Of a DNA stretch of 64,000 bases, positions 31,127-54,982 are shown one piece after another. The notes beneath the pieces were generated by a model. The model had not been told where the DNA came from and searched no databases. It worked only from the letters and a program-made list of their open reading frames with translations. Each line of letters begins with the position of its first letter. The stretch's first letter is position 1. The stretch is from Blastocladiella emersonii ATCC 22665 (lineage: Eukaryota; Fungi; Blastocladiomycota), in contig JANHCV010000009.1 of NCBI GenBank assembly GCA_025594325.1, positions 1,550,001-1,614,000 on the forward strand, in the 5' to 3' direction. The position numbers were made by a program, and so were the translations under genes.

Positions 31127-34100
31127 CTACACCCCCGTTGCCGCCGCGCTCACGTCGTACCACTGCGCGCGGCAATTCACCGCGGCGCGGCGCACGAGCC
31201 GCTTCGGGTCGTCGACGGCGCCCGCGAGCCCGCGGAGCACGCTGCCCTTGACGGGGAACAGGACCGCGAACTTGAGCGTCGCCAGCGCCGCGAGCGTGTT
31301 GAGCGCGGCGATCCGGACGCGCATCGGGTGCACCCGGCCACCATCGTTGGCGAGCGCGAGGAGCAGCGGGACCAGGGCCGCGACGTGGTCGGCGACCGCC
31401 GCGGGCGCGTTCTTGGTCATGAGCGCGAACGTGCTGGCCGTCGAGACCAAGAGGTCCGGGTCCGTCGCCGACAGCGCCGCGAGGAGCAGCGGGACCAGGT
31501 CCTTGACGCTGCCCAGGAGCACCTGCTGCGGCACGTTCTGCAGCAGGTGGCCGAGCGCGAGGAGGTACGCGTCGCGGTCCCCCGACCCCGCGCCCGCGAC
31601 GATCCGCGGCAGGCAGTAGTGGAACAGCCGCTGCTTGTACAGGAGCTTGACGACGGCGAAGCTGTCGCGGTTGAGCACCTGGTCGCAGTCGCCGATCAGG
31701 ACCCCGAGCCCGCGCGCGGCCTCGGCGCGCGCCCAGGCCGCTGGCCCGGAGAGCAGGTCCAGGAGGACCCCCGCGAGCGCGGTCCCGCGCGCGTGCGAGC
31801 GGAGCAGCAGGCCTTTCGCGGTCCACGTAAGGATCGCAAGCGCGCGGGCGTCGCTTGGGTTCGCCAAAATCGGCGCGAGGTGAGGGTGCGCGAGGATGGG
31901 TTCGGGCGCGGCGGACTTGTTGGCGAGGGTCCCGATCAGCTGCCCGACGGACGCCGCGGGGAGGGAGGCGTTGCCGAGGACCGACGTCAGCAGGTCGGCC
32001 TCGGGGATTGGGAGGGAGACGGTGCGGCGCGCGTTGCCGACGATGGCGACGAAGACGGGGAACGTGCGCGCGTGCGCGTACCACTGCCCCGCGAAGACTT
32101 GGTCCAGGATGCGCGACTGCGACTCGGGGCTACACGTGGCAGTGTCAGCTACGGGGCAGTCGGCAGTGCGGATGAAAAACGTACGGCGAGAGCTTGCGCA
32201 TCATAATCGCCGCAACCTCCGCGATCGTGGCGCCCGCGTGCTCGGGGAGCCGGTCGATCTGGACCACGACGATGCTCGCGAGGTGGTCGGGGTGCACCGT
32301 CTGGGCCGAGTGGACGACGGCGCCGAACGTGGTGAGGAGGTCAGGCAGCGGGCCCGCGTCCTCGCCTTCCCCCACAACCGCCGTGCTGGTCGCGAGCGCA
32401 TGGACGCGTGCGACGAGGGCCTGAACCACGTCCGCGAACAGGTCGCTCTCGCGGGCGAGGAGGGCGAGGGTCTCGAGCTTGACGGGGTTGAGCGGCGCCG
32501 CGGATTCGTGGGACGTCGCCGTCTCGAGGTGCCGCACGAGGTCCGGGAGGACCCATCCGCGGACGAGCGCAGGCGACTGCTTGGCGACTTTGGCGAGGAG
32601 CGCCATGGCCTCGCGGTGGACCTCGGACGCGCCCGCCCCGCTGCCCCCACCATTGGGCATGTCAATGGCAGCGACGAGGTGCTGGACGTACGTCGCGGCC
32701 TCGTCCTCGGCCAGCAGCCCGCGGACGGCCATGGTGTGATAAATCCCGCGGAGGCCGAGGATCTGCATGGACGTGATATTAGACCGTGCCGCGGTGAAGA
32801 AGCACCCGTACAGGTCGTTGGCGAGGAGGCGGAGCGGCTGCGGGGCCGCCGCATGCCCGGCGCACCCCTCGACGAGCTGGACGAGGGCGTCGACGAGCGT
32901 CTTCTGCTGCGCGGGGAGCTCCTCGGCGCGGAACCGGGTGATGATGAGCGGGGCGGCTTTCGCAATCACGGAATCCGCGATGCCCGGGTCGGCGCGCACG
33001 AAGGCGCGCAGGATGTGCGCCGAGACCTTGGCGAGCTTGGTCTCGGGCTGCGCGAGGTGCGTCAGGCACTCGTGCATGCCCGGGGTCAGGATCAGGTCGA
33101 CGGGGTTGGTGCGCGACTCGGACGTGATGCAGAGCACGCGGAGCAGCGTGGCGAGCGTCGTCAGGGCGAGCTCCTCGTGCGCCGCGTCGACCGAGTGGAA
33201 GATGTCGTTCTTGAGTGCCTTCCACAGCCGCGGCACGTGCGCGAGGAGCGTCGGGCCCGCGCCGTATTTCGGCAGGGCGAGGTGCAGGACGGCGAGGGCG
33301 TCGCGCTTGGCGTTGGCGTTGGTCGACTCGAGCTTTTCGAGCAGGCTCGGGATCGCGTACCCGGCGAACGACGAGGACGCGGCGAGGCAGGCGGCGAGGG
33401 CGGATTTCAGGTCGGCGGCCGAGATGCCCGAGGGGTCATCGGGCGGCGGCTTGAAGGTGATGGGGAAGTAGCAGAAGCACACCTCGAACAGGTCCTGCGC
33501 GCACGTGGCGAGGTCGCAGTGCAGGGCGAGCTGGGTCACGGTGCGGAAGGCGACCATGAGGTTGCGCGGATCCTTTTCGCCGTCCATGGCGGCAATGTAG
33601 CCGGCGAGGAAGTCGGCCTCCATTTCGCGGCGCACGTCTGGGGTTTACGAGTGTTAGTGGTGGTTGAGCGGGGGTTTGGGTGGACGCGTACAGTCGATGT
33701 GGCGGGCGGCAATCACGTCAAAGATGACAAAGAAGCGGTTGCGGACTGTCTGCGAGAAGCTCTGGACGTTGACCTCGGCAAAGATTCTGGGGATACGGCG
33801 AGGGAGTGTGAGTGGTACTCGACATGCACTGAGTGGAATGAACACGGACTTGCGAAGCAGAGCACCAATGTCCGCGTCGCTCAGACGGCCAGCAGTGAGG
33901 AGCGCGGCGATACCGAGGGCGACGTGCGGGACGCAGAGCTGCTGGTCGAGCTGGTTGATGAGGAAGTTGGCGAGGAGCGAGGCTATTGGGCGGGCGGGCG
34001 TCGTGAATGGTCGATCGGTGGGTCGCTGGGACAAGGAACGTACCCTCCTGCGGGTTCAAGCTGCCGACGCGCGCCTCGGTGACCTTGGCGAGGAACAGGA

Positions 34101-34397
34101 CGCCTACGGGACGAGATCAGCGGTCTGCCCTGCGGAGCGAAATGGCAGGGACCGTACCGCGCTCACGCACGAAGGCGTCGGTGTGGGTGAGGATCGGGCT
34201 CAACGCCTCAGTGACCTCGAGCAGCGTTGCGGCCCCATTCTCGAGCGCTACGTGAGGCGTGCCCTGTCAGACTCGATCGCTCGGGCGGGCGGGTGATGTT
34301 CCCGCGTACCCGCGGCGGTCTCGGTGGCCACGGCGGCGACGGCGGCCGGTCCGTCGGCTGCGTGCAGTTTGCCTGCAATCATTTCATTGGCTGTCAT
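31127..34397 (-). CDS. MMS19: MMS19/Met18, HEAT-repeat component of the cytosolic Fe-S assembly targeting complex
   Basis: GYIAAMDGEKDPRNLMVAF, LFEVCFCYFPITFKPPPDDPSGISAADLK, KLLYKQRLF and C-terminal DDPKRLVRRAAVNCRAQWY; several introns; ATG 34397. Confidence 0.93.
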
Positions 34398-38173: not shown

Positions 38174-39193
38174 TCATACAAACGACGACTCGGGGGCCGC
38201 GAGCTCCTTGAGCTTCTCGTAGACGGGGAAGAAGAGGAGGCAGGTGCCGAACCACCACGACGAGCGCCAGGCTGCCCCGCGGTACAGGCCCTTGACCCCA
38301 CCGTCTTCCCGGTAAATGGCGCGGAGCCCCTGCACGATGCCCGGCTGCGCCTTGGCGGCGGCCGTGGACGTCAGGACGCGCGTGCGCAGCACGTCGAGCG
38401 GGGTGGTCACGAACCCGGCGAGCGCGCCCGAGATCCCGCCGAACAGGGCCGAGGGCGCGGTCGGGATCTCGGGCACCGTGGAGTGCGGCCCCTCGGCGGC
38501 GCGCACGGCGGCGAGGCGCGACGCCTGGTACTGGGCCTTGAAGTTCTCGTACGTGACGAGCAGCACGATCATGAAGGGCCCGTCGCGGCACACGATGGGC
38601 AGGAACCCGCGCCACAGGCCCAGCACGCCCTCTTCCCGCACCACCTGCCGCGCGACATCGCCCGCCGACAGCGGGGCCGCGCCTTGGGCGGTGACCTGCA
38701 GGCGCGCCGTGATCACCTCGCGCGGCACCTTGACGACGCTCGACGCGAGGTCCGACACGAGCGCCGACAGCGTGATGGCGAGCGTCGGCGGGGCCTCGGG
38801 CGCGTGCGTCGCAAACGCCGTTTTCGTCGCCTCGTACGCCGCGAACCGGATCCCGCCCTGCGGCGCGGCGCCCACCACGCTCGCCGCGAACCCGCGCGAC
38901 AGCACGCGCAGCAGGTCGCGCGCTGTCGTCGAGGTGGCGGTGCCGGCCTGGATCCGCGTCTTGATCGTGTCGAGCGGGTGCATCGACGCGTACGCGAGCG
39001 CGAGCGCCGTCGCCCCCGAGAAGAAGGCGGCCGGGGTCGTCGGCGGGTCGCGCGTCACGGCGACCGACGTCGGGTGGTGCAGGTGCCGCGCGAAATGCGA
39101 CGAGGACGCGGCGGCCAGGCGGCGCGCGGCGGCGGTGGCCACGGCGGGCGAGGTGGCGGCCGTGGTGGCAGTGGCAGTGGTGGTCGATGACAT
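38174..39193 (-). CDS. Mitochondrial carrier, SAM-carrier-like (Pet8/SLC25A26 group)
   Basis: Three carrier signatures (HPLDTIKTRIQ, KVPREVITARLQ, TTPLDVLRTRV) plus GLWRGF...RDGPF. Substrate is inferred only. Confidence 0.8.
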   Translation of the reverse strand: MSSTTTATATTAATSPAVATAAARRLAAASSSHFARHLHHPTSVAVTRDPPTTPAAFFSGATALALAYASMHPLDTIKTRIQAGTATSTTARDLLRVLSRGFAASVVGAAPQGGIRFAAYEATKTAFATHAPEAPPTLAITLSALVSDLASSVVKVPREVITARLQVTAQGAAPLSAGDVARQVVREEGVLGLWRGFLPIVCRDGPFMIVLLVTYENFKAQYQASRLAAVRAAEGPHSTVPEIPTAPSALFGGISGALAGFVTTPLDVLRTRVLTSTAAAKAQPGIVQGLRAIYREDGGVKGLYRGAAWRSSWWFGTCLLFFPVYEKLKELAAPESSFV

Positions 39194-39527
39194 GGTTGTT
39201 GGTTTACGTGGTGGTGGAGGGCTGAGGTCGCGCGACGGGAGAGTTCTTGAAGGTGAGAGCGTGAGCGGGGGCGAAGCACATTCGGGGCGAGAGAGCGGGG
39301 GGAGAGCGGTTGAGGGGAACAAGAGGCGAGGAGGGGCGAGACGTTAAAGAGGCGCGACACGGTTCGCGGCGCGCTCCCCGGAAATGCGATGGGAAACAAG
39401 AAGGAGCAGCCACGGGTGCGTGATGGGCGGGTGATGGCAAATCACGGCGGGGGTCGACTCACCGGGCAGGGCCACCTGACGCGCGCGCCTGAAAGTGATA
39501 ACGCCGTCACACGAGCGCATTTTTCTG

Positions 39528-39815
39528 ATTGGCCCAGCAGCGACGCAAGCCGCGCGCTGGGTCACGCCGCACGGGATTCCCAGCCAATGAGCGAATTCGC
39601 GGGTGACCCATTTCCGCATTTAGGCAGAGTTGAAAGCGAGGCTGGCGCGCCGGGCGCCACGCGTGACCGCTTTCCGCGTCGCGTCGGCCGCCGCGGGACG
39701 TGTCGGCATCTCGGGGCCCCTCTATCGCTGGCCTCGGGCACTCTCGGGTCTTTGGATCGCCGACGACTCGACTCGACGGGACAAGCGACCGAGGACCCGC
39801 ACCCGCCGCTATAAG
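39528..39815. promoter_or_regulatory. Bidirectional promoter elements: two oppositely oriented CCAAT boxes and a TATA-like element
   Basis: CTGATTGGCC (ATTGG at 39528-39532) and AGCCAATGA (CCAAT at 39584-39588) both fit the extended NF-Y/HAP consensus. TATAAG at 39810-39815 lies 89 nt upstream of ATG 39904. All lie between the divergent carrier and Leu-fusion genes. Confidence 0.5.
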
Positions 39816-39903
39816 AACCCGCGGCCGCCCGCGCTCCCACACCGACCTGCACCCACCACCGACCCACACCCCCTGTTCTCGCACACGCATCAACAAGACA
39901 ACC

Positions 39904-42900
39904 ATGGCTGCCCCACAACGCGTCGTCCTCCTCCCCGGCGACGGCATCGGCCCCGAGATCGTCGCGCAGGCCTCGCGCATCCTGGCGCTCTTCCCGACCC
40001 AGATCACCACCGAGCACGCCCTCATTGGCGGCGCCGCCATCGACGCGGCCGGCGACCCGTTCCCGCCCGCGACGCGCGACGCGGTCGTCGGCGCCGCCGC
40101 CATCCTGCTCGGCGCCGTCGGCGGGCCCAAGTGGGACGCCCTCGCGGCCCAGGGCAAGTCGCCGCGCCCCGAGCAGGGTCTGCTCGCCATCCGCAAGCAC
40201 CTCGACCTCTTCGCCAACATCCGCCCCGTCTACTTCCCCGCAGACAAGTGCATGGACCTGTCGCCGCTCAAGCGCTCGACCCTCGAGGGGTTCAAGCGCT
40301 CCACCGTCGTCCGCGAGCTCGTCTCCGGCATCTACTTTGGCCAGCGCGCCGAGGCTGCTGACCCGTCTGCTCCCGACGCTGCTGGTACGTTTTCCCACCT
40401 TGCGCTGCACCTCGACGAACGAACAACCCACTAACCTTCACAAAACAGCCCACGACACCATGTCCTACACGCGCGCCGAGATCGAGCGCATCACCCACCT
40501 CGCCGCCAAGCTCGCCCTCGCCTCGAACCCGCCCGAGCAGATCACCCTCGTCGACAAGGCCAACGTGCTCGCCACCTCGCGCCTGTGGCGCGCCACCGTC
40601 AAGGACATTCTCGCCCGCGACTACCCGTCCATCCCCGTCGCCTTCGAGTACGTGGACGCGGCCGCCATGCACCTCGTCAAGCACCCCGCCAAGATGAACG
40701 GCATCACCCTCACCGAGAACCTGTTCGGCGACATTCTCTCGGACGAGGCCTCGGTCATCCCCGGCTCGCTCGGCCTCATGCCCTCGGCCTCGCTCTCCAG
40801 CATCTCCACCGCGACCGGCACGTTCGGCCTGTACGAGCCCATCCACGGCTCGGCCCCCGACATCGCCGGCACCGGCAAGGCCAACCCGATCGGCACCATC
40901 CTCTCGGTCGCCCTCATGTTCCGCTACTCGCTCAACCTGCCCTTCGAGGCCGACTTGATCGAGGAGGCGGTCCGCGCCACCCTCGACGGCGACGCCACCC
41001 ACGAGCCCGCCGTGTGCACGGCCGACCTCGGCGGGTCCGCCACCACGGCGCAGGTCGGCGACGCGATCGTGGCGCGCCTCGAGCACCTCCTCGCCACGCG
41101 CCGCCGCCCCATGAACATCTGCGAGAAGATCCTCACGGACGCGGCCATCGGCATCCAACGGCCCGGCCATGTGCGCCCCGGCGACATGGTGTGCGTCAAG
41201 GTCGACTGGACGCTCGCCTCGGAGCTCACGTGGAAGGGCATGGAGAAGACGTTTGACCTCATGGGCCGCCCCAAGATCCACGACCCGAAGCGCTTCTGGC
41301 TCGCCATCGACCACACGGTCGACCCGCGCATCAACGACCAGGAGAAGCCGCGCGGCCTGATCGCCGCGTCCGAGCGGTTCGCCCGCGAGGCCCAACTCAC
41401 CGACTTCCACGGTCCCAACCAGACCATCCTCCACACCGAGTTCTGCCGCATGCGCGCCCAGCCCGGCCAGGTCATCATCGGCGCCGACTCGCACTCGTGC
41501 TCGGCCGGCAACGTCGGCGCGTTTGCGGTTGGCCTCGGCGCCGCGGACGTGACCTTGCCCATGTGCACGGGCGAGACGTGGCTGCGCGTGCCCGAGGTCG
41601 TCGAGATCAAGTTCGTCGGCCGCCCCAAGTTCGGTATTGGGGGAAAGGACGCGATCCTGTACGTGCTCGGCCAGCTCAAGCGCAACACAGTCGCCTTCGA
41701 GCGCGCCGTCGAGTACACGGGCCCCGGCCTCGCGCACCTCTCGGTCGACGCCCGGTTTGCGATTGCCAACATGACCACCGAGTTTGGCGGGATCGCCGGC
41801 GTTTTCGAGGCCGACGCCGTCACGGCGGCCTACCTCGCGGCGCGCCCCGACCACAAGGACGCGGGCAAGTACTTCCGCCCCGACACCAAGGCCCAGTACG
41901 CGGCGTCGCACACCATCGACCTCGGCCACGTCGACTCGCTCGTCGCCCTGTACCCGTCGCCCGACAACGTGGTCCCCGTCGTCGAGGTGGCCGGCAAGAA
42001 GCTCGACGGGTGCTTCATTGGCGCGTGCACCACGGCCGAGGAGGACCTGATCCTCGCCGGGCTCGTGCTCCGCGCCGGTCTCGCGCGCGGGCTCGTCCCG
42101 GCGCTCGGCGGTAAGCGCAAGGTGACCCCCGGCTCGGTCCCCATCGTCAACAAGCTGCGCCGCCTCGGGCTCGTCGCCGTGTACGAGCAGGCCGGGTTCA
42201 CGGTCGGCGTGCCCGGGTGCTCGTACTGCCTGGGCATCGCGGCCGACGTCGCCGGCGAGAGCGAGGTGTGGCTGTCGTCGCAGAACCGCAACTTCAAGAA
42301 CCGCATGGGTAAGGGCTCGATCGGCAACCTCGCGTCCGCGGCCACGGTCGCCGCGTCGTCGTTCGACATGAAGATCACGGACCCGCGCGAGCTCCTCGAC
42401 GCCGTCGACGAGTCCGAGTTCAAGCGCATGTGCGCGTTCATGGACGTGACCCCCGAGCTCTCGCCCAAGGGCGCGCCCTTCACCGTCACGGAGCCCAAGT
42501 GCGAGTGGCTCGAGTCGCAGCAGCAGCAGCAGCAGCAGCAGGCGGCGCCCGCGTCGCCGACGGGATCCGCGACCACGGACTCGGACGCCGAGGCCGACTC
42601 GGCGCCCGCCCCGCTCACGTCCGTCATCGAGGGCCGCGCGCAGGTGTTCGACGACCACGTCGACACGGACCAGATCATCCCCGCTCCGTTCATGCCGGGC
42701 AAGGACGACGCGGACCTCGGCATGCACTGCTTCGAGTTCTCCCGGCCCGAGTTCCGCGCGCGCGCCGCGGCCGGCGCGACCATCGTGGTCGCCGGCGAGG
42801 GCTTCGGGTCCGGCTCGTCGCGCGAGGAAGCCCCGCGCGCGCTCAAGGGCGCCGGCATCCGCGCCGTGATCGCCAAGGGGTTCGCCTTCATCTACAACCG

Positions 42901-43243
42901 CAACCAGTACAACATGGCGCTCCTCGGCGTCGTCGTCAAGGACGAGGCATTCTACCAGCTCGCGACCGAGGGCGCGACCGTCGCCATCGACGTGCCCGCG
43001 CGTGTCGTGCGGGTGGCGGGACGCGCGTTCCCCTTCGCCCTCTCCGACTTCGAGGAGCGCCTCGTCTCGGGCGGCGGCGTCACCGACATGTACTCGGCCT
43101 ACGGCAAGCGCCTGTTCCGCGTCAACATCGCCGCAGGCAAGAAGCGCGCGCGGATCGAGGCGGCTAAGTCGTCGTCCTCGGCGTGTGCGACGAAGACGGA
43201 GGGTGAGAGCGGCGGGTGTGCGACCGAGACGCTCGCGTGGTGA
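39904..43243 (+). CDS. Fusion of 3-isopropylmalate dehydrogenase (LeuB/Leu2) with an aconitase-family dehydratase (LeuC-like and LeuD-like domains); 1091 aa after splicing
   Basis: Exon 39904-40384, intron 40385-40448 (GTACGT...CTAAC...CAG), exon 40449-43243. IPMDH motifs: LPGDGIGPEI, GPKW..RPEQGLL.IRK, RELVSGIYFG, DKANVL, NLFGDILSDEA, EPIHGSAPDIAG. These run with no stop into MNICEKIL, DHTVDP, GADSHSCSAG, FIGACTT, PGCSYCLG, SSQNRNFKNRMG, a polyQ linker, DTDQIIP and FGSGSSREEAP. Confidence 0.93.
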
Positions 43244-43933
43244 GGAGACTAGTTTTGCGTATATACATATCAACTGTTCTGTCAAATGATGTCCTGCCTT
43301 CTGCTCGCGGGTGTCAGTTCCACGCTCGCGTCGAGATCGCCTTCGTTCACAACGCGTGAACTTGGTTATGCCGCGATGAGCGAAATCGTTCTTGCAGTCG
43401 ACTTCCGTATGCGACGCGGCCGCACAAGCACTCGAAGTGAACACGTCACCGGCGGTCAAGGAACTGGTGCAGCGCGTCGCATGATGCGGCGCTCGCGTCG
43501 TGCCGTGTACCGAACTCTAGTTCCTGCTCGACGGCGGTTGCGAGAGAAGGATGAGCAAGCGCTTTCTTTGGATGATGGCCGCCAGCGGGGAACAGCTTAA
43601 CGGCGATGAAGAAGCCGTGTACATGAGGACGACGAGTATCCAGCCAAAACTTGTTGGGTCTTTGCTCCGCTGACATGGACGGGGTGAAGACCGATACCTA
43701 CGAGAATATGACAATCCACATCAGGGCATTGCGTGCTGAGGGTATCAAGCGCAGCCAACGACTGGCGTCGCGCGCACGCGTTCCAACGAGCGCCGCGCAG
43801 ACGCCACGATCGGATCGATAGTGCAGATTATTGATAATAAACAATTCAAGAAAGTCAAGTGCTAGAGATCCATACTTGCGGACCTCGGTCCGCGAGACAC
43901 CGGTGAACCCGACGCGTCGATCAATCATGTGAT

Positions 43934-43975
43934 CGGCCAGCGGCCAACGGCCAGCGGCCAACGGCCAGCGGCCAC
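43934..43975. repeat. Short tandem repeat (CGGCCAN)x6
   Basis: cggccag cggccaa cggccag cggccaa cggccag cggccac read directly from the sequence. Confidence 0.85.
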
Positions 43976-44288
43976 CCGCGTCGGACCTGGGTCGCAGCTC
44001 GCGTTACCCTCAATTTTGCTTTGCTTCTTGCTGGCAAGAAGTAAGCGCGTAAGGATCGAGGCGGCCATTCCGTCCTCGTTGTCTTATGGGAGAGAAAGTC
44101 CGCGGCGACGGCGGGTCGGAGTGACGGTGGGTCTGGGACAGATGCGCTCGCGTGGAGACGAGATCAGAACCGGAAATCATGTATATACGAGGCGGGCGAA
44201 GCTGCCAGCACATAACAATTGAGAGAATCGCACAACAACATCAACGCCCTATGCTTCCTCCAACGTTCGAACCATTGCGCTTGAAAAC

Positions 44289-45256
44289 TTATCCTCGCCC
44301 AATTTGCAAGCGGAGCCGCGGCGATACCTCACGCATCAATCGCGCGCCGTCGCCCGTGACCGCGGCGCCCAACAACCACAGGGATACACTGCGCGTTTCA
44401 AAGAGCTGGGCGAGTATCAGTCCGCCGGCATCCGTGACGTTTCGGGCAAGGGTCAGGCATTGAAGGCTCGGCGGAAGCGCGGGCGCGAAGGCGGCAATCA
44501 CCGCGTCATCGCAGTTCGCCATGGCGAGATGCAGTTTCTGGAGCTCGGGAGGCATGTGAGCCGCGAGGCACGCGGCCTCTTCGCAGCCAAGGTCGGCCGC
44601 ACAGAGGTCAAGTGCGGTGAGCGAGCCAGGCAGCCTCGAGATTATCGCAAGGGCGCCATCACGCGACACGTCGCAGCCGCTCGCGTCAAACGTTTTGAGG
44701 CTAGGAGGAAGCGCGTGTGCAACCGCAGTGATTGCGTCGTCGGTGCTGGAAGAGAAGTTGATTGAGAGGCTTTGAAGCGAGGCGGGAAACGCTCCGCCAA
44801 TCGAGTCCAGAAGCTGCAATGAAAGGACTTCACCCGAGATGATAAGGGATTCGAGCGAGGGCGGAAGGCTACGAGGGTCTTCTTGAACAGGTTCCGAGAG
44901 CTCGGCAGCAGCCGTCGCCTCAACAGCTGAGAGAGTACCCGCGTCGACCGCCACCACTCGAGCGTTTCGAGGCTGTGCGAGTCAAGTGCAGCCTGTAGCC
45001 CATCGTTCGAGCAGCGGAGCGGGACGCCAAGTGCCTTCCACTTGTTGAGGAGGGCGAGGTTGCAGCGCGCAGTCGCGACGTTGAGTGAGAGACTCGGCGC
45101 ATTCAGCAGTAGCGCTCGCTTGACGCGCGGAGCCGCGGACCGCGGCAGAACTCGCGCATACTGCAAGTATTGGTCGATATCGGGAGACCCGTCCTGCTCA
45201 ATCGCATAAACAAGAAGCCACTCAAGCACGGAGGGGAGATGGAGGGCCCTGAACAT
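44289..45256 (-). pseudogene. F-box-like/ankyrin-like/26-aa LRR gene, frameshifted
   Basis: N-terminus LPSVLEWLLVYA...YARVLPR and ankyrin-like LNKWKALG...ETLEWWRS. After a frame change near 44930-44950 come six LRR units with a 26-aa period (LPPSLESLII, FPASLQSLSI, LPPSLKTFDA, LPGSLTALDL, MPPELQKLHL, LPPSLQCLTL). Confidence 0.65.
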
Positions 45257-46054
45257 GTTGCATGAAGTGTGCGTTGCGTTCGGTGAGGGTCCACGAAGAG
45301 CAAAGGAGAGAGTAGCTTTGTCGGCAGTCGCTCTAGCCAGGGGGGCTGCTCTAGCGCGGCGAACCGCTTGCTTGTATGCGGTCAGGTGCAGGGTGCAGCA
45401 CCCCTGGGATGGCGCATGCGGTCACCAGCGAATCACATGATTGATCGGCGCGCCGAGATCAGAGCGTTTCGCACGTCTCTCTCTGCGAATTCGCACCACT
45501 GGCACTCGGCTTTCCGGGCCAATTAGGTTGTAATGCACGCCGTTGGGCGAATGATACCGCCTGCGCTCAGGGAGACGAAGGCGGCTCGTGCCCTCACTCG
45601 TTATCGTCAAGGAGAAGATGGTATGACCAGAGAAAAGCCGCCGTAGTGCCGCGAAGAGCCTGCTGACTGTGACATGCGTCACCGCTCTCTGTATGCACAC
45701 AAGCGCAACTCGCGCATTACTTACACTTGCACGGAGGTGAATCAAAACCGTGAGTCCTGTCGTTGGCGCTCTTTGCCAGGTTTTTGTAGTTGGCGAGCTC
45801 AGCGTGGCTTGCGGGTACTTATCAAAACTGAGCCATTGTTTGCGAGGCTCAAAACTGTATTCTTTTAAAATATGTAACTTACGAGACAGGTCGCCAAGGC
45901 GAAGGGGAGGGTCAACGTTTGCTCCCTTCCCCACGCGGTGGTGAGCCGCACGTGACCTGTCAAGGCCATCCTCGGCGAAAGTGGAGGCGCGCGTCGAGTC
46001 GGTCATCCCGAGCGCCTCTCCAACTCCCCTTCCCTCACATACGCACCCAATAAC

Positions 46055-46455
46055 ATGCTGCAATCGAATGAAATACCGTCCCTGCCCACCGAGGTCGTGG
46101 AGCGAGTTCTCGTTTTCGCTCTTCTTGCGAGCGACCCAATCGAGTCAGACCTGGTCCGCTATGCTCGCGTTTTTCCCCGAGCCGCGGCGCCTGATGTCTT
46201 CAGCACTAAATATCGCTAAACGTGCTTTGACGAAGGAGAAGATAATGCTTGCGTGCGAGCGAGGCGCGCTTCACGTCCTTCGCCTTGCCAAGTCGTGCGG
46301 TGCTTTTGGTCTCGAGCGACCTACTTGAGTTTCTCATCGCGACGAGACTCAACTTTCACCTTCATGTCTTGGAGTGGTTTCGAGACGAAAGCGGGTTGGA
46401 ACTCCCATTGAATTGCGTGCCTCAGAGTTGCCGCGAACTGTTCACCCCTTCTTGA
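46055..46455 (+). pseudogene. Frameshifted paralogue of the F-box-like/ankyrin-like gene at 45256
   Basis: MLQSNEIPSLPTEVVERVLVFA...LVRYARVFPRAAAPDV aligns with LPSVLEWLLVYA...LQYARVLPRSAAPRV. Downstream frames give ACERGALHVL and LHVLEWFRDESGLELP; TAA at 46217. Confidence 0.6.
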
Positions 46456-47573
46456 GTGGTACGTCCGGGTTTCGCTGCCGTCCCAGTGCGGCGTTCTGAC
46501 CACACACGGCACATCCAGGATCCAGTTACGGGTTTGCGTTTTGGACTTGGCGACCAGTCGGCCGAGTGAATGGCTCCCTTAATTGCTTCTGGTCGTGTCA
46601 CGGAAGTCATTTCGTGGTTCGAGGCTGACTGAGGTCGGAACTCCTATTTTGCAAGATGCTTTCGCAAGTCCGCGCCAAGCGGTGATCAAGGCTCCGTTTG
46701 ACAATGCGGCGCTCACGCTTCTAAATCTGCTGCGTTTTGGGCTTCCCGGCACCCATCGCGAACTTCACCTCGGTTACAACTTCCTCGCTCACCGGAGTCC
46801 CGAGGTAGCTGGAAAGTGATTGAGAACCAAAACCGAGGCGTTAAGATGCTTAATTCAAAAATGAAGCTTGCGGAGGTGAGACGGGAAGGTATGTCTCACG
46901 TCTCGCGTATCTTGCATGATCGGTCACGCCATTTCCCGACGCGTCACCACTCTGCCTCCCACCTCCAATCTCCCGCGGTCGAGGTGAAAAGCGCAGCCGA
47001 TCGCTTAACCGGGACAAAAAGTATGTACATTTTAATGCGAAAAGAGATTGAGGACGCTTCAAGTGTCAGCGCGGAAGGGAGTCACACGATGACTGAAGGT
47101 TATTTTGACGGGGCTCGTGGCCTGATTGTGCGAGTCATCCCGATCAACCGAAATCGATCTGTCCCCGGCGAGTCCTCAATCGTGTCATGAGCCTTAACCG
47201 CTCGACTCACGCCCCAACCAGGGGGACGACAAAATTGCATCTAGTAGGCCGTCCCACTGCCCTTCGCCTCGGATACCTGCTGCTCTGGACAGTTATCGAA
47301 AATTTTATGTGTTTAATGTCGGTTTTCAGCTTTCAGTTCAAACTGGACAGGTAGCGGCGGTCGAGGAAACTAAAGCTTCCATCTGCATCTGGCCAGGTTT
47401 GTCAATAGGTTTTGCGAGCACTGCCATAGATTAGTTCGCGCCCGGCCGCAACTGGTGACTCGCCGCCCGTTTCCTGTCGCCCTCAAAAGGTGGCCGCACC
47501 CCCGCCGCGGACGTGAGCTCTCTTTAGCTCACGTTTCCGGATCATACAGTTATCTCGGGAATCGTGTGGGCAC

Positions 47574-50500
47574 GACACCACCAGCGCCGTCATCGGAAAT
47601 CGCGGATCACAAATTGTGCGGCCAGCTGCAAATTTGCACTCAATTCTTGGGCCTGGTCGGGTGAGGGTCGAAATCGCATATCAGGATTTCTGGTGAATGC
47701 GATACATGAGCGTGATGGGTGAGGTCAGGGGGATTTTTTGCTGGTGGTCGTGGTGGTTATAGTCGCCCTTGAAGTAAGTTGGACTTTTCATCACAACGGC
47801 TCAGTCGATTGCGCTGTTCTCGAAGGTGATGGACTGACCGTGCTAAGAGCTACAAAAGAGATAATTAAGCGTTGGGGTGGTTGGAAGCCGGGTGTCAAGA
47901 AAAAAATGGCGATCGGATTCTCAACGCTAACACACCGCCAGGGTTGATTCAAGAAGCTAACCTCGAAAGTCGTTCCTGCGCAACGGAGTGAAGAATGTGA
48001 CTCGCGGAAATATATTTAGCGCTCAGAGGAACACGGAAACGATAGACACAGTTTGAATTCATGGGGTCGCAAATCGAGTACAGCATCCAATCCAGAGGGT
48101 AAACAGGCTTTCTCCTGGCGGCAAACTGGTCAACTACCTCTACCTCGGTAGATAAACTTGGTTTCCTGGCCGGGATTGCAGTTTAAAGAGGGCGAAACCT
48201 ATGTTCGCCTGAAGGGGTTTGCGGCACGCATGCTGTTGCGGATTGCGCTCGCGGATCGAGCTTATTAGGTGGACGCCTACCGGCGCGGCAGGCCAAGCGG
48301 CCAAAAAAAGTTGATTTTCTTCAATTGTTTGTACGTGGCCGCATACTGGCCCGATTCGTACAAGTTGACGAGAGCGAGCGAGTGAAGGACCGCTTCCGCT
48401 AGCACAAATGGACAACAATTGCCAGCCTCGAGTAAAGCTGGTGAGTCCTGGTACTTAGCTTGCTCACAATTCAGCGCTTCAGCGAGAGCGCGCGGGACGG
48501 TCGCCCAACCAGTGAAGCACGTCCACGGCGCTGAACCGGCACGTTGCAAATCTTTCCAGACCTGAATGAGGTGCATGCGATCCAGTCGGTGCGATTGAGT
48601 GCCTGGAACGCATCAAAGGCCACTTCAGAGAGTTGCGAATGGTGCTATTCCTTTGCTTGAACACAGGGTCGCGGAACGGCCATGCTCGAGCTGCCTCTGA
48701 CGCTGGTAGAACATGTAACACCCCGTGATCGAGCTTCACTATCTGCCACGCGACGATTTTAGAGTTGAAACGCGACGTGAACGTTTCCAGCTTCATGGTA
48801 GAGTCATGGATCAGTAGGCGACATTCTGTTCGTCACTCAAGGGCGGGTCTCCGACTTGGCGAGCGGCCCTATCAACTAGCTGAAGCTACCGGCGGTCAAA
48901 TCCAAAGCGGACATGACTTCTTCTGATGCGCTGGGAGCGACAGGCGCGGCTCGTCAGCGGCTGGCGGTACCTGTGCTACGGGTTCAGCGCGGCGCTCGAA
49001 TCACGCAAGTAGACATAAACTAGGCGCAATTTGGAAGAAATCCATGGGTTGAATACATTGCATCAACTGGCATCTACAGCATGCGTAAAACATGCACGGA
49101 AGGTGGATGGAGCAAATCAGCGAGCTGTGGCGAGCGTGTAAACTCCACCGTCCGACGCCACCGCAGGGTCACGTTGGCCGCGTCCGTTCATGCTTGGCCT
49201 GCGAGCTCGTTCAGGCGCAAGGTCCCCTTCAATCCGCGATGAATGACCTTTGCGGCTCGCTTGAGAACCTCGCGTCAGCTGCGGTACGATCCGGCCGCTG
49301 CGATGTGCTTGGTACTCGCTCTCGTGCGGCTGAGTCCAGCCGCATCCGTAACATCCGGCTGTCGTCGCGCAGGCAAGAGAGCCGAAGGCATGAGCTCGCT
49401 CTTAGTATGTTCGTACGACCGTTACACGGTTATCAGACCCGGCTCGCTTCTCGGCCCCAGTTCACGAAGGAAACGGGGGGTGCTCGCTGTGGACACGAAT
49501 GCGTGGAATGGGACGGCGAGCTGCGACCCCAGCAACTGTCATGACAAGGGTCTCGTCGCTTCCAAAGCCTAACCAACATCTAAGCTTTGATCGACTCGAG
49601 AACAAAGGGGGGTAACCGCGCGGCCGCGTCACGACCCCGAACGCGCCGTGCTTGCCCAGTTCCTCCCTCCTCCCCTCGCAGTCCTGCTTTCAAGTGCAGT
49701 TTGTCGTTTTTTTTTTAACCGCGCGTTTCAAGGCTAGCGAAACTGAGCGAGAGTCGTGGCACGGCGGGTTGCGAGACGGGGTGCGAGACGCGTCGCGAAA
49801 ACACGTGTGCGGTCACCCGCACGTGACACAGCTTGGCTTGGACTTTGCCGCGAGCGCGCGTCGGGGGAGCGAGTGACTCTTCGCCACGCCGCGGTCGGTC
49901 CCCGCTCTCTCGCTCATCACCACTCGCTGCAATGTATCACCCGTCCACCAAAGAAGCACACTACGATCTCGACGCGCGGCAACCACGCGGCCACCGTCAA
50001 CAGGTACGCGTCACATCCCGCTGCCGCGCCCGCCGCCGCGCGCTTGGCTCCCATCGCGCCGACCGTCGTGTTGCGCTCCCGTGGCGGTGCGCCCGGTGTG
50101 GTGCCCTTCACACTCTGCTCTGGCGCGTCGACGACGCGCTGTGAGACCAGCGGTGTCGTCGCTGCCGCGCGTGCGCACCGTCGTACGCGGGCTCCGCCGC
50201 GCTCGTTCCTCGGGCGCAGCACGGCACAGCGCAAGGGGACCCCACCGGGCTACCAGCCGCGTGCGCGCTCGTCAAAGGTGCTGACACCTGTGCGGTGCCC
50301 ATGTAGCCGCCGGCGCGCGTCCGCCACCAGGGACTCGACATTTTGAAGACTCATGGACCTGAGACCATCGAGCCAGCCTCGCTCGCGACGGTACACCGTC
50401 TCCGCCACACCACCACCGCGTGTCTCATGCACTCACGCTGCACGCTCGCGCCAGTAGCGCCGACAGGCTCGCTCAAGCGGTTCGACCGCGGCCACCGCGT

Positions 50501-51327
50501 GCGTCAAGTCCCAGTCGCAGGTACGTTTGACACTTCTCGTCGCTGCGCAAGAGTTGGCGCGCGACTGACATGCTCGCTCGCATTGCTCCTCGTAGCCCCT
50601 CGTGATCCACTGGTCTCTCGCTACACTATCGACCCGCCGCCTCTCAACGGATGAACAACTGGCGCGCAGCATCCGCAAGCTGTACGGCGCCGTATTCGAG
50701 GCGACTCGGTACGCCCTCGTCACACGCCGCTCGAGGCGCAGCGCGACTCACATGAGCTCTCGGACCTTTCTTGCTTGTAGCAGCGATCTCTGACGACCAT
50801 CTCGCCCGGCCGGTTTCTGTACTCGGGGTCGTGGCGCGACCTGACCGTGGATCGCAGCAAGTGCGACGCGCACGCGGTTTGGGTCACGGTCGGCGGCTTC
50901 GAGTGCGGAGACCTGGTGCTGGCGACGGCGTCTGCTCTCCGCTCGGGTACTTGCTTGTCGTGCATCGTCGTCGCGCGCGGGCCGGGATTCCGACTCGCAT
51001 GCCGCGCGACCCGCGGCGGTGGCGCTCTGACCTGTATCTGATATCTCGCTGTACGCAATACACTCGCAACTTTGCACCAAAACGCAGTCCCCATCGTGTA
51101 AATTTGCCAACAATTCGTGCGCCAACCGGGTCGCTCGTCTCACAAATTGGCCATCAAATGTGCCATCAAGTCGCAGCAGATTGAACGGCAATTGGTTGCT
51201 AATTCGCTGTCCTAGCCGAACCGTGGGCCGCCGCTCAATTTGGTGCAAATTTGCTCAGGTTTAAAATTTGCCTCCAAACCGTGTAAATTGGCCGCAAATT
51301 CCCAAGGCCCGGATTTCCGATGGTGTC
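47574..51327. repeat. Degenerate inverted repeat pair (47574-47645 and 51237-51327), possible old DNA-transposon ends
   Basis: Left arm: GACAC..CATCGGAAATC..AATTGTGCGGCCA..GCAAATTTGCACTCAATT. Reverse complement of the right arm: GACAC CATCGGAAATC..AATT-TGCGGCCA..GCAAATTTGCACCAAATT. The blocks are in the same order, with indels. Confidence 0.5.
49932..51041 (+). pseudogene. Spliced, probably decayed gene of unknown function
   Basis: Two clean intron-like segments (about 50521-50594 and 50708-50780, with GTACGY donors and TAG acceptors) flank coding-like exons. No single uninterrupted frame could be assembled. Confidence 0.3.
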
Positions 51328-52495
51328 TCCCCCCGCGGTGCTCTTCACGTTGGGCTTTTGAGTGCGGTCTCACTTGGCTCGCGGCTTCCATACGCGCTTT
51401 GCCTCTTGACCATGGACGTCTTTGAAGACAGGTGTGCGCGCAACCGCTTCTTGGACCTAATCGAATTTGGCGACCTCGAATTTTGTCCGACTCCACCGAC
51501 TCCTTGTTGAGTATGTGCCAACCGTCGCATCGCCCTTTGGGGTCGGCACTGTTGAGGCCGAGTTGATGACGATATATATCATAGCTCTTTGTTTGTTCTT
51601 TGAGTTTCCGTGCTCTTCCGCTCAGCGAACACTGAAGAGGAGGAGATGAGAGCAGTTGGACAAGAGACACGGCCGTGGTCGGCTTGCAAAGGAATATTCG
51701 ACCCGACCTTCACGTAGCAACGCTTTTGTCGCGCCGTAACGATGGCGACGGACCGTGGCTATGACCATCTCACTGCTCTGCGCTGACACGACTGCGATGC
51801 CATGGCAACCGCACTGCCCCGCGCTACAAATGCCCTGACACGCGTTTTTAAGATCGAGAATTAATCCAATTGACAATTGAGGCCATTTGACGCGTAAAGA
51901 TATGCATTCACCATCATTCACCATCTTTCGGGGCAGCATTCGAGTCACGGGGATGGGCGGAATGGGCGGAATGGGCGACAACGAGTGCGTTTCAAGCCGC
52001 GTGCGTGCGCGCCTTCGCCACTCACGTTCGCTTTTGCCGAGCTTTGCTTGCCTGCCCGCTGCCCGCCCCGCTTGCACCCGCCCGCTCTCTCCAACCCGCC
52101 GCAAGCGCCCGCCTGTACACTATAGAGCGTCGTCGTCACCGCCGCCGACCGACGCACGCACGCCCGAGCGCCCTCCCTCCCCTGCCCGCTCGCCCGCTCG
52201 TCCGCCGCCCGCTGCCGAGGCACCCCCACCGACCGCACCGCCGCCCCGACCTCGCCACGGCACCCATCGAGCGTGCAGCAGGGACCGTCCAAGGGCCTGT
52301 AAAGTGTATGCAAAGACCGAACCGCGAGTGGACAAGAGAGCAAGCAGCTGACGCTGACGCCGACGCCACACTCGTTCCCCGCCTCGCTTCTTGCGCCGCC
52401 CGCTGCCGCCGCTCCCTCTGCTGGACCCGGTGGACCGCTGCAACCCCCATCTCGGTCTCTGCCCCCGCTCCTCGCCCGTGTAGACCCCGCACTTG

Positions 52496-54982
52496 ATGAA
52501 TAGCACCGCCGCTACCAACATGGCGACCATCTCCGAAGAGCCCGAGCTCGGCGCCTCGTCCTCGTCCGCCGCCGCCGCCCTCACCGGGTCCGGCTCCGGG
52601 TCCGGGTCGGGCGACGACCACGACCACGACCTGCAGTACGACTCGTCGTCCTCGACCAACTCGGGCGCCAGCGGGAACGCCTCGGGCGCCGGCGGCCGCC
52701 GCTCGCGCAACCCGGGCCTCACCATCGACACGGCCAGCTCGAACGCCGCCGCCGCCACCGCCGCGGGCGCCTCGTCCAACGGCGCCGCGTCGCCCACGTC
52801 GCCGTCGTCGGCCTCGCCCACCGCGCCCATGACGCCGTCGACGCCGCTGTCCGACGACGTCGACTTCTCGCTCGTCTACGCCCTGCACACGTTCGTCGCC
52901 ACCATGGAGGGCCAGGTCGCCGTGGTCCGCAACGAGCCGCTGATCCTGCTCGACGACTCCAATTCGTACTGGTGGCTCGTCAAGCCGCTGCGCAGCAACA
53001 CCATCGGCTACATCCCCGCCGAGATCATCGAGACCCCCTACGAGCGCCTCGCCCGCGTCAACCAGCAGAAGAACGTCGAGCGCGCCCTGTTCCGCTCCAA
53101 CGACATCCCCGGCGCCCCCTCAAAGTCCACCCGCCCATCGCTCAACCCCAAGACGGTCGTCTTCCCCGCCGACCCGCGCGGCGGCTTCTTCCAGTACTCG
53201 CCCGCCGCCTCGGACGTGTCCAGCGACGAGGACGAGGAGGACTACGACCCCGAGAAGACCAAGACCCCCGACGACGTCGCTTCCAGTGGTTCCGCCGACC
53301 ACTCGAGCGACGACGACGAGGCCGACGACGACGCCATGGACGTGGACGCGGCTGCTTCCGCTGCCGACAAGAAGTCGGACGCCGAGCTCGACGCCGACTT
53401 TGAGGAGCCTGCATCCCGCCGTTCCTCGCTCGGCGCCGGCCTCCTCTTGCGCCAGCGCGACCAGTTCGACGACGAGGACGAGGACTACAACGACGAGCTC
53501 GCCCTCGCCACCGCCGCCGAGCCCGCCGCGTCCCAGGACGTCGAGTTCACCGAGGCGGACGCGGCCGCTGCCCCCGCCGCCGAGAAGGACCTGCGCCGCT
53601 CGGCCGAGCCCGTCGCCGTCTCCATCGAGGAGCCCGTTGCCAAGATGGTCATCGACGAGACCCCCGTCGTCACCGTGACCCCCGCCGCCGCCGCGGCCCC
53701 GTCCTCGGCTGCCGTTTCGGCCGGCGCGTCCCCGCGCGCGACGCCGTCGGCCGACTTGGACGACGACGACGAGCCCGCGGTCCCCGCCGCGTCCGAGATC
53801 GACCCCATCACGGTCCTGCGCATCTTCCCGGGCAACTGCGCCATCCCCGCCGACGTGAACCAGTTCAAGACGGTCGTCGTGACCAAGTCCATGTCGGTCA
53901 AGGAGCTCCTGCGCCAGGCCATGCTCAAGTACCGCGTCTTCGGCCCGCTCGCCGCCGCCCGCCGCACCGACGTGCCCGAGGAGACCATCCTCGCCGACTG
54001 GTACCTCACGCTCTCGTTCAACGGCGCCGCCAACGGGCACCACCACGTCCTCAACCCCGACGAGAACGTGCTCGGCGCCCTCGCCGCCATGCAGAAGCAG
54101 GCCGAGGAGGACGCCGCGCCCGCCGCCACGTCGTCGTCGGCCGCGGCCCTCGCCAAGCCCCGCAACATGTTTGCCCGGTTCGCTTCCAAGCTCTACACGC
54201 CGACGCTCCTCGCGTCCACGCGCCAGGCCAAGCACCACCTCGCCAAGCCCATCCTGCACGTCATTTCGCCCCAGGACTCGTCGTCCATCCGCCTCATGCT
54301 GCACCAGCACTCGTTTGTCGCCAGCAAGGGCGAGGGCTCGCCGTCCATGGCGACGCGTAACCTCGCGCCCGCGGCCGGACCGGCCGCCGCCGCGACTGGC
54401 GCTGCCCTCATCCGCGTCGAGCTGCAACAGCCCGCGCCAGCGGCCGCTGTCGACCCGACGGCCGCCGTCGACGAGCTGCCCGTGCGCATGGCCAAGACCC
54501 TCAAGGTCGACCGCTCGTCGCCCGCGTCCGTGGTCATGCGCGCCGCGCTCAAGAAGTTCTCGCTCGCCGAGGGCCGCAGCGTCGGCGAGCTCCCCGAGTT
54601 CGAGCTGTACGGCCCGTCGCCATCAACGAGCGTCCTCGCCCTGGACGCCCCGCTGCCGCTCGACGCGGCGTCCGGCAGCAAGGCGACGCCGACCTTCACC
54701 CTGCGCCGCGTCGCCACCGCCGTCACGCGGACCACGCTCACGCTCGCCGTCACGTCGCCCACGGTCGAGGAGGCCGCGGGCAGCGTCAAGCTCCGCGTGC
54801 CCGGCCCGCCCGAGGGCTCGCCGCGGTCGCCCGCGCCCGGCGAGGTCGTCTCGCCCGGCTCGTCCAACAAGCGGTTCTCGGAGCTCTTCTCCGAGGCGCA
54901 GCAGCTCGACCTCACGCACATCTTCGACGAGGACGCGGCTGCGGCTGGTCGGAGCGCACCTGCGACGGCACCATCGCACTGA
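52496..54982 (+). CDS. TEA4: Tea4/Bud14-like cell-polarity protein: SH3 domain, RVxF-type PP1-docking motif, two RA-like domains
   Basis: YALHTFVATMEGQV...LLDDSNSYWWLVK...IGYIPAEIIETPYERLARVN is the Bud14/Tea4-type SH3 plus extension. KTVVF at 53150-53164. RA-like segments VLRIFPGN...FKTVVVTKSMSVKELLRQAMLKY and KTLKVDRSSPASVVMRAALKKF. Confidence 0.8.
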   Translation: MNSTAATNMATISEEPELGASSSSAAAALTGSGSGSGSGDDHDHDLQYDSSSSTNSGASGNASGAGGRRSRNPGLTIDTASSNAAAATAAGASSNGAASPTSPSSASPTAPMTPSTPLSDDVDFSLVYALHTFVATMEGQVAVVRNEPLILLDDSNSYWWLVKPLRSNTIGYIPAEIIETPYERLARVNQQKNVERALFRSNDIPGAPSKSTRPSLNPKTVVFPADPRGGFFQYSPAASDVSSDEDEEDYDPEKTKTPDDVASSGSADHSSDDDEADDDAMDVDAAASAADKKSDAELDADFEEPASRRSSLGAGLLLRQRDQFDDEDEDYNDELALATAAEPAASQDVEFTEADAAAAPAAEKDLRRSAEPVAVSIEEPVAKMVIDETPVVTVTPAAAAAPSSAAVSAGASPRATPSADLDDDDEPAVPAASEIDPITVLRIFPGNCAIPADVNQFKTVVVTKSMSVKELLRQAMLKYRVFGPLAAARRTDVPEETILADWYLTLSFNGAANGHHHVLNPDENVLGALAAMQKQAEEDAAPAATSSSAAALAKPRNMFARFASKLYTPTLLASTRQAKHHLAKPILHVISPQDSSSIRLMLHQHSFVASKGEGSPSMATRNLAPAAGPAAAATGAALIRVELQQPAPAAAVDPTAAVDELPVRMAKTLKVDRSSPASVVMRAALKKFSLAEGRSVGELPEFELYGPSPSTSVLALDAPLPLDAASGSKATPTFTLRRVATAVTRTTLTLAVTSPTVEEAAGSVKLRVPGPPEGSPRSPAPGEVVSPGSSNKRFSELFSEAQQLDLTHIFDEDAAAAGRSAPATAPSH

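Follow-up and report, generated by a model that had tools for sequence, protein, structure and literature searches.

Does the gene at positions 39904 to 43243 of the DNA analysed here, a window of 64,000 nucleotides from Blastocladiella emersonii ATCC 22665 (assembly GCA_025594325.1, contig JANHCV010000009.1, positions 1,550,001 to 1,614,000; all coordinates below are window positions), encode a leucine-type dehydrogenase and an iron-sulfur (Fe-S) dehydratase as one polypeptide, and which reactions would such a protein carry out? The gene lies, with all of its parts, on the forward (+) strand. Exon 1 (39904..40384; open reading frame listing, Pfam and spliced translation) holds the start codon and the first 160 1/3 codons of a LeuB-type 3-isopropylmalate dehydrogenase (IPMDH) domain, and homology in its frame ends at the GTACGT donor at 40385. 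A 64 nt, phase 1 intron follows (40385..40448; sequence and spliced translation) with a GTACGT donor, a CTAAC branch site and a CAG acceptor, and exon 2 (40449..43243; open reading frame listing, Pfam and protein match) carries the remainder of LeuB, the junction, the dehydratase, a linker, a swivel domain, a tail and the stop codon (43241-43243). The Pfam Iso_dh profile is split by the intron, with positions 2-146 before it and 154-348 after it, and the spliced coding sequence (39904-40384 plus 40449-43243) is in phase and free of stops for 1091 amino acids. The predicted product is 100% identical in a protein search to the NCBI "hypothetical protein H9P43_007436" (1091 amino acids), whose Pfam domains are, in order, Iso_dh, Aconitase and Aconitase_C. 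The proposal of the first-pass annotation, that dehydrogenase and dehydratase are fused in a single polypeptide, is thus borne out, and so is its statement that there is no mitochondrial presequence, because the protein N-terminus, MAAPQRVVLLPGDGIGPE, opens directly on the dehydrogenase fold. By all that its sequence tells, the gene is a genuine, intact and ancient fusion.

The two enzymes are joined through only six residues, A-T-R-R-R-P (41093..41110; alignment, with the same junction in Catenaria DNA). In a junction alignment the RR[PG] before the first dehydratase residue is kept across the whole fusion family, and the pattern ..RR[PG][ML]..CEKI.. is repeated in dozens of species. The DNA of Catenaria anguillulae (MCFL01000056.1) is continuous through an identical ..LATRRRPMNICEKIL.. 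junction; since the junction recurs in dozens of species and the Catenaria open reading frame is unbroken, the fusion is not an accident of assembly or annotation. We note that the Catenaria annotation (L002:6001-9407) gives "partial" dehydrogenase and dehydratase genes that overlap by 6 nt, and because no break in the reading frame occurs at the junction this split looks like an annotation artefact. The single frame might still be expressed as two separate products, by way of an internal promoter or a start at Met382, with no bifunctional protein in vivo: that in-frame ATG stands exactly at the dehydratase start, and a preprint on S. pombe aco2 describes a fused aconitase gene that also gives a truncated mRNA (bioRxiv 10.1101/2019.12.16.879015). 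We consider this improbable, as Mortierella and Zancudomyces have Leu in place of Met382, the RR[PG] junction is maintained at the amino acid level, transcriptome assemblies of Salpingoeca, Physarum, Leptophrys and Petalomonas contain full-length fused open reading frames, and a stop between the modules is absent from B. emersonii, from the Catenaria DNA and from every full-length database protein compared.

The N-terminal part, residues 1-375 (39904..41092, a span that includes the intron), is a LeuB/LEU2-type IPMDH domain by its TIGR00169 match, by comparison with solved structures and by its invariant residues. It scores 409.3 bits with TIGR00169 leuB (equivalog cut-off 353.2), residues 6-368 aligning with profile positions 1-346 of 349, and it falls far below every cut-off of the homoisocitrate, isocitrate and tartrate dehydrogenase models; in the structure-sequence comparison IPMDH structures likewise outscore these three kinds of dehydrogenase by far, solved IPMDHs matching at up to 4e-95 and the homoisocitrate dehydrogenases of the PDB at 5e-39. 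Among the invariant columns of 22 stand-alone fungal LEU2 proteins 111 of 117 residues are kept; the substrate, metal and catalytic motifs IRK, NIRP, VRELVSGIY, VDKANV, YVDA and FGDILSD are complete, and the six changed columns lie outside them. In the T. thermophilus IPMDH we take the key residues to be Arg94, Arg104, Arg132, Tyr139, Lys185, Asp217, Asp241 and Asp245. A motif scan places RPEQGLL, which supplies the Glu-x-x-Leu-Leu of the isopropyl pocket, at residues 88-94 (40165-40185), VDKANV at 40550-40567, YVDAAAM at 40649-40669, FGDILSD at 40724-40744, and HGSAPDI, which contains the NAD-type GSAPD, at residues 293-299 (40844-40864). The earlier description of the domain as a leucine-type, NAD-type IPMDH therefore stands, with a TIGR00169 score above cut-off, 111 of 117 LEU2-invariant residues and a position nested within the LEU2 tree. 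The closest stand-alone proteins among the best 120 are fungal LEU2s (53–58% identity). None of the 120 closest stand-alone IPMDHs comes from a fusion-bearing genus, such entries being only fragments of fusions, and because of this the dehydrogenase domain is most likely the organism's own LEU2.

The C-terminal part begins with an aconitase-superfamily large module of archaeal LeuC/HacA type, residues 382-815 (41111..42412; Pfam Aconitase 6e-69 and alignment to 4kp1/4kp2). In the alignment with Methanocaldococcus jannaschii LeuC/HacA (4kp1/4kp2) FIGACTT falls on FIGSCTN and PGCSYCLG on PGCGPCLG, and alignment and motif scan together place the cluster ligands Cys687 (42026-42028), Cys751 (42218-42220) and Cys754 (42227-42229). 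The catalytic motifs of the aconitase family (DH, DSH, N..E, NRNF..R and GSSRE) are complete, as AIDHTV (41303-41320 by motif scan), GADSHSC (41480-41500, likewise), ANMTTEFGG, SQNRNFKNRMG and GSGSSRE. An inter-domain linker, residues 816-885 (42413..42622; alignment and motif scan), has a family-conserved first part and a low-complexity second part, the Q8/Ser-Ala stretch of residues 851-885, with the Q8 at 42518-42541 by motif scan. The LeuD/HacB-type swivel domain, residues 886-1047 (42623..43108; TIGR02087 and alignment to 2pkp/3vba), bears the substrate loop IIPAPFMPGKD (42674-42706; alignment and loop conservation) and the GSGSSRE motif (42806-42826; motif scan). All of the landmarks on which the fusion had originally been recognised, RPEQGLL, GSAPD, FIGACTT, PGCSYC, the polyQ/Ser-Ala linker and the LeuD-like swivel, could thus be located. 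The name LeuC-LeuD given at that time is right in that an intact Fe-S dehydratase with its swivel is present, and needs correction in that the module is archaeal in type and not a homologue of LEU1 (bacterial LeuC/LeuD): the swivel is narrowly above the archaeal LEUD_arch model TIGR02087 (113.9 bits, cut-off 108.95), and the models of canonical LEU1 are not reached (TIGR00170 leuC 140.4 against 560.25 bits, TIGR00171 leuD 63.6 against 116.25 bits). From its sequence the dehydratase is an archaeal-type module, not LEU1-like, and represents a divergent eukaryotic branch with no characterised member.

Such a pairing could in principle suit the synthesis of lysine, since a homoaconitase-homoisocitrate dehydrogenase fusion would serve the alpha-aminoadipate route. 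Fungi use the aminoadipate pathway, the dehydratase matches the M. jannaschii homoaconitase as well as it does the isopropylmalate isomerase (IPMI), and a HacB structure is the best match of the small-subunit part. The model scores point the other way: AksF-type homoisocitrate dehydrogenase models give 187–197 bits against cut-offs of 500–540 where the LeuB equivalog is passed, the PDB comparison (5e-39 against 4e-95) and the nesting within LEU2 agree with this, and the fungal homoaconitase model TIGR00139 gives 154.1 bits against a cut-off of 529.9. The FMPG loop of the swivel is hydrophobic, is conserved within the fused clade and is without the Arg of the homoaconitase YLRT loop; because it has no Arg for a distal carboxylate, homoaconitate is an unlikely substrate and a hydrophobic side chain is favoured. 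We have rejected the lysine-pathway reading on the model scores and the substrate loop, and regard it as very improbable.

A link to the leucine pathway comes from Mortierella. In a Mortierella sp. (L003:678-13433) five genes stand in a 13-kb row that constitutes a eukaryotic branched-chain amino acid (BCAA) cluster: acetolactate synthase large subunit, ketol-acid reductoisomerase, an enoyl-CoA hydratase (ECH)-family gene, acetolactate synthase small subunit and the fusion. This neighbourhood of ILV2/ILV5/ILV6-type genes matches the arrangement that Sonnabend et al. (2022, PMC8880518) reported for M. alpina as the ilvF2-ilvE2-leuB1 cluster. Their leuB1 primer codes for the peptide FKTELIG, which the Linnemannia fusions carry at residue 45; the M. 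alpina leuB1 primers have no match at the fusion locus of the different Mortierella species examined here (L003). M. alpina LeuB1 is thus probably an orthologue of the fusion, an identity that is drawn here and is not stated in that report, where LeuB1 is treated as a Leu2 homologue, the words "fusion" and "fused" are absent from the main text and "aconitase" is absent from the supplement (PMC8880518). A leucine-pathway role of the dehydrogenase is well supported at the level of sequence by the LeuB equivalog score, by LEU2 orthology in the tree and by the Mortierella BCAA cluster.

The role of the dehydratase is the more difficult question. On balance we favour a cytosolic bifunctional enzyme that performs the last two leucine-specific steps, and we infer that 2-isopropylmalate is the substrate of its dehydratase; an IPMI role is favoured by the physical link to LEU2, by the relatives that also contain LeuA and by the repeated loss of the module in lineages that make leucine. 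Several observations weigh against this. The large module is below each NCBIfam large-subunit cut-off, even for its best matches, which are models of archaeal LeuC/HacA type (the generic PRK00402 313 against 385 bits, IPMI_arch 280.6 against 410, hacA_fam 273.2 against 386), and because the M. jannaschii IPMI and homoaconitase are equally good matches to the dehydratase the sequence does not by itself name the substrate. The PFMPG of the swivel loop is neither the archaeal IPMI YLVY nor the bacterial IPMI loop. M. alpina, furthermore, possesses a LEU1 homologue of the canonical type (E = 0 against yeast Leu1) which, unlike leuB1, is repressed by leucine (PMC8880518). With this LEU1 present beside the fusion, leucine synthesis does not a priori require the fused dehydratase; their long coexistence hints at a separate role for it, and its strong conservation beside LEU1 suggests that it may have a function that LEU1 does not cover.

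These same observations would be accounted for if the N-terminal module were a leucine IPMDH while the dehydratase isomerised some other 2-alkylmalate, such as citramalate or 2-ethylmalate supplied by a promiscuous synthase, LeuB oxidising the product and a canonical LEU1 encoded elsewhere in the genome handling isopropylmalate. The LEU1 of M. alpina with its separate regulation, the sub-threshold large module and the clade-specific FMPG loop, different from those of characterised IPMIs, all count for this; so does the better conservation of the dehydratase than of LeuB (identity to Allomyces 80% and 74%, respectively), a sign that its role may not be redundant, and so does the ability of M. 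alpina LeuA1 to take 2-oxobutyrate as well as 2-oxoisovalerate (PMC8880518). On the other side, the module has been lost repeatedly in lineages that make leucine (Dikarya, many chytrids and Basidiobolus), which is easier if it duplicated LEU1, the four-domain relatives described below join it to a LeuA-type isopropylmalate synthase, and in Mortierella the orthologue has BCAA genes as its neighbours. We know of no alternative pathway that would need such a dehydratase in so many eukaryotes. A 2-alkylmalate other than isopropylmalate is a rather unlikely substrate in our judgement, if the most serious competitor of 2-isopropylmalate.

The location of the protein is suggested by its C-terminus. 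The tail (43109..43240; compared among family C-termini) ends Leu-Ala-Trp (43232-43240), a candidate tripeptide for the targeting complex of the cytosolic iron-sulfur assembly (CIA) machinery. Among the listed relatives of at least 1000 amino acids the terminus LAW occurs in 44, LDW in 10 and LSW in 9, and [LIM]-x-W closes most of the remainder; a final x-W is also present in almost every stand-alone eukaryotic relative and absent from a bacterial homologue. The CIA targeting complex recognises [LIM]-[DES]-[WF]-COO- on clients such as yeast Leu1, a benchmark client that ends Gln-Asp-Trp (10.1101/2023.05.19.541488), and Ala before the terminal Trp has a modest effect on binding (10.64898/2026.04.06.716496). 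Compared as sequence with that consensus, L-A-W agrees in the Leu at −2 and in the terminal Trp, and the Ala at −1 is outside the strict form. The conserved L-A-W thus fits a tag for clients of cytosolic Fe-S maturation, and together with the missing presequence it is consistent with the cytosolic location first proposed. Eukaryotic members of the family, whether fused or stand-alone, also conserve a Cys, often Cys-Gly, at a distance of 8–12 residues from the C-terminus; in the B. emersonii protein, whose last 12 residues are encoded by 43205-43240, the distance is 8 residues.

In the bifunctional enzyme that we favour, the C-terminal module, consisting of a three-domain [4Fe-4S] part (Cys687, Cys751 and Cys754) and a covalently joined swivel, would isomerise 2-isopropylmalate to 3-isopropylmalate by dehydration and rehydration, and the N-terminal module would use 3-isopropylmalate, NAD+ and a divalent metal to form 4-methyl-2-oxopentanoate by oxidation and decarboxylation. 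The active sites of IPMDHs are formed across a homodimer, so the protein should dimerise through its LeuB domains, and one dehydratase module would hang from each LeuB domain of the dimer so held. The cluster would probably be inserted by the cytosolic CIA machinery, recognising the C-terminal L-A-W. Channelling of 3-isopropylmalate between the modules is purely speculative.

A protein search with the exon-2 protein found 1144 relatives, of which the best 120 were inspected. Nearly all of these 120 have the same three domains in about 1040–1130 amino acids, and the architecture is common to more than 100 protein clusters. The fungal carriers are Blastocladiomycota, Chytridiomycota, Neocallimastigomycota, Zoopagomycota and Mucoromycota (Mortierellomycotina, Glomeromycotina, Endogonales and Calcarisporiella), and further carriers are the ascomycete Neolecta, a nucleariid (Nk52), Physarum, the choanoflagellate Salpingoeca urceolata and Amoeboradix. 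Many of the entries are automatically named "3-isopropylmalate dehydrogenase" or "putative aconitate hydratase". The first-pass annotation named no described fusion of this kind; this domain-architecture check finds more than 100 clusters, in fungi and protists, already public and widely annotated, so the fusion is not confined to B. emersonii. The architecture is uncharacterised but not unique, a fused variant of known leucine enzymes, and it is less novel than first thought because its sequences are public and widespread. A full-text literature search found no published description of the fusion; it may be listed in Leonard & Richards 2012 (PNAS, fungal gene fusions).

Five of the relatives (P0107, P0108, P0111, P0113 and P0115; 1340–1559 amino acids) have a fourth, N-terminal domain of LeuA type, a match to the NF002086 2-isopropylmalate synthase equivalog at 526 bits that is without the leucine-binding regulatory domain. 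One of them (P0108) is a transcript of the rhizarian Leptophrys vorax and the other four are metagenomic; one metagenomic gene is an intronless 4.7-kb open reading frame on a 107-kb eukaryote-like contig (L007:585-5261). To judge by its domains, such a protein may hold the whole leucine-specific branch in one chain.

In the LeuB-domain tree, which agrees with the species phylogeny, fused genes are intermingled with stand-alone ones: the fused Neolecta gene is sister to Saitoella LEU2 (Shimodaira-Hasegawa-like approximate likelihood-ratio support 97), Basidiobolus LEU2 lies among fused Zoopagomycota, and chytrid LEU2s lie among fused chytrid genes. Monophyly of the stand-alone genes is rejected, as that constraint costs 155 log-likelihood units (approximately unbiased test, p = 0.0016). 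Among the dehydratase modules, those from fungal fusions form one clade (support 99) with the same phylum structure as the LeuB tree, and the junction motif RR[PG][ML]-x-x-x-EK is common to fungi, Physarum and the choanoflagellate. The conserved junction and the two domain trees point to one old fusion followed by repeated loss of the dehydratase, and the simplest reading of these sequences is a single ancient fusion with several later losses of the C-terminal module, stand-alone LEU2 being the derived form. The fusion would then predate the fungal radiation, and the stand-alone LEU2s of Dikarya and many chytrids would be later truncations. Here it must be weighed on the other side that both domain trees are unrooted quick trees; because of this we infer the fusion-first direction from the shared junction and from parsimony. 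More tentatively, and with rather more doubt than belief, we suggest that the fusion is ancestral for Fungi and probably for a wider group of eukaryotes, that the stand-alone LEU2 of yeasts and mushrooms is its remnant, that the dehydratase represents a second, as yet uncharacterised, CIA-tagged eukaryotic IPMI family which passes 3-isopropylmalate directly to LeuB, and that LeuA was added in some protists, so that one chain would serve the entire leucine-specific branch.

Apart from these stands an ascomycete clade (P0078-P0120; Fusarium, Clonostachys, Verticillium, Pseudogymnoascus, Penicillium, Aspergillus thermomutatus and Pestalotiopsis) with about 49% identity and a long branch, in which the dehydratase and an FMPG/FVPG loop are kept and the dehydrogenase retains only 42–80 of the 117 LEU2-invariant residues (37–75 lost); some relatives are entirely without the dehydrogenase part. 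The fusion in this clade has probably been neofunctionalised. It raises the further idea that the B. emersonii protein is an accessory enzyme of secondary metabolism, elongating a chain to a homo-amino acid or alkyl-oxoacid like the clusters that recruit LeuA, LeuB and aconitase-like paralogues. Aspergillus and Fusarium have canonical LEU1 and LEU2, and an accessory role of the ascomycete clade would agree with its long branch and poorly kept dehydrogenase. At the one locus of this clade that was inspected (Pestalotiopsis), no biosynthetic cluster was found around the fusion. The B. emersonii protein, however, belongs to the other clade, shares about 60% identity across all of the early-diverging fungal phyla, follows the species tree and keeps 111 of 117 LEU2-invariant sites, and no Pfam biosynthetic-cluster gene was found among its called neighbours. 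We therefore reject a role in secondary metabolism for the B. emersonii clade, where it has hardly any probability, and consider it plausible for the separate ascomycete clade.

Upstream, the gene shares a divergent intergenic region (39194..39903, read directly from the sequence) with a mitochondrial-carrier gene on the reverse (−) strand (38174..39193; Pfam). The region contains ATTGG, an inverted CCAAT box, at 39528-39532, a forward CCAAT 52 nt further on (39584-39588) and TATAAG (39810-39815) 90 nt before the ATG; in Aspergillus Fe-S enzymes are under CCAAT-complex/HapX control. The divergent carrier is conserved in all three Blastocladiomycota genera examined, Blastocladiella, Catenaria (L002:4141-5300) and Allomyces (L005:6849-7771). 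The idea that it exports isopropylmalate is unsupported, its subtype being only generic Mito_carr. The gene for MMS19/Met18, a subunit of the CIA targeting complex, lies 5.5 kb upstream (31127-34397, − strand); this adjacency is probably due to chance because it is not seen in Catenaria or Allomyces, and we reject it as a functional link. Between 36 and 56 kb there are no matches to Rfam families. Downstream, 9 kb (43244-52500) are without a gene in the NCBI record and have a lower G+C content (0.54–0.59), and an open reading frame absent from the annotation (44289-44957, − strand) has a leucine-rich-repeat-like periodicity.

Fungal geneticists use few genes as much as LEU2 and LEU1, and the leucine pathway has been proposed as a target for antifungals. 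If our reading is true, most early-diverging fungi (arbuscular mycorrhizal fungi, Mortierella, gut fungi and insect pathogens) would wire this pathway unlike the model yeasts, making LEU2 as the N-terminal part of a chain of about 1090 residues that also has an Fe-S dehydratase from a family without a characterised eukaryotic member, and published overexpression of Mortierella "LeuB1" may have handled a bifunctional protein unawares. The "Rosetta-stone" link would also give the orphan branch of the aconitase family, that of oomycete plant pathogens included, a probable function as a 2-alkylmalate isomerase feeding LeuB. The protein would further be a natural system in which to study substrate channelling to a dehydrogenase from an Fe-S enzyme that is sensitive to oxygen, and a test case for Fe-S delivery to a multidomain client directed by a C-terminal tag. 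The chemistry is not new in kind and the sequences are already public, so the surprise is limited.

Compared with known systems, the protein resembles several enzymes in part. Relative to fungal LEU2 and bacterial LeuB (TIGR00169; Thermus thermophilus 1hex and 2y3z), residues 1-375 are a full-length orthologous member, but the fusion continues after the six-residue junction into a 710-residue dehydratase where LEU2 is free-standing with about 370 amino acids. Mortierella-family fusions stand beside ILV-type genes, as M. alpina leuB1 does, and LeuB1 has been presented as a Leu2 homologue (PMC8880518). S. cerevisiae Leu1 is like the C-terminal module in its presumed reaction and location in the cytosol, its single-chain layout of large part and swivel, and a C-terminal Trp of the kind seen in CIA clients, but it is a bacterial-type LeuC-LeuD, while the fusion module belongs to a different subfamily, of short archaeal type, with a different substrate loop. 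The nearest dehydratase relatives without a dehydrogenase are the stand-alone eukaryotic type-II LeuC-LeuD proteins of about 700 amino acids (oomycetes, Corallochytrium, Umbelopsis/Backusella and some Aspergillus), which are of the same dehydratase family (58–67% identity) and, like the fusion, are single chains with a C-terminal x-W, but form separate clades with other loops and are uncharacterised. We note that oomycetes and Corallochytrium each have two paralogues of this stand-alone type with differing substrate loops (P0243-P0295, P0296 and P0314), and that one oomycete clade carries a 12-residue insertion (..GLNKSSPLWP..). The closest solved structures for both parts are the M. jannaschii IPM/citramalate isomerase (4kp1 with 3vba) and homoaconitase (4kp2 with 2pkp), with which the motifs and cysteines align; these are two-chain heterodimers with YLVY and YLRT loops, whereas the fusion is one chain with FMPG and has low identity to them (E ~1e-52). 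Finally, the four-domain LeuA-LeuB-LeuC-LeuD proteins have the same domain order and junction as the fusion and are 49–50% identical to it (best local alignment, synthase excluded), but they add the synthase domain, branch as a clade of their own and differ in the substrate loop.

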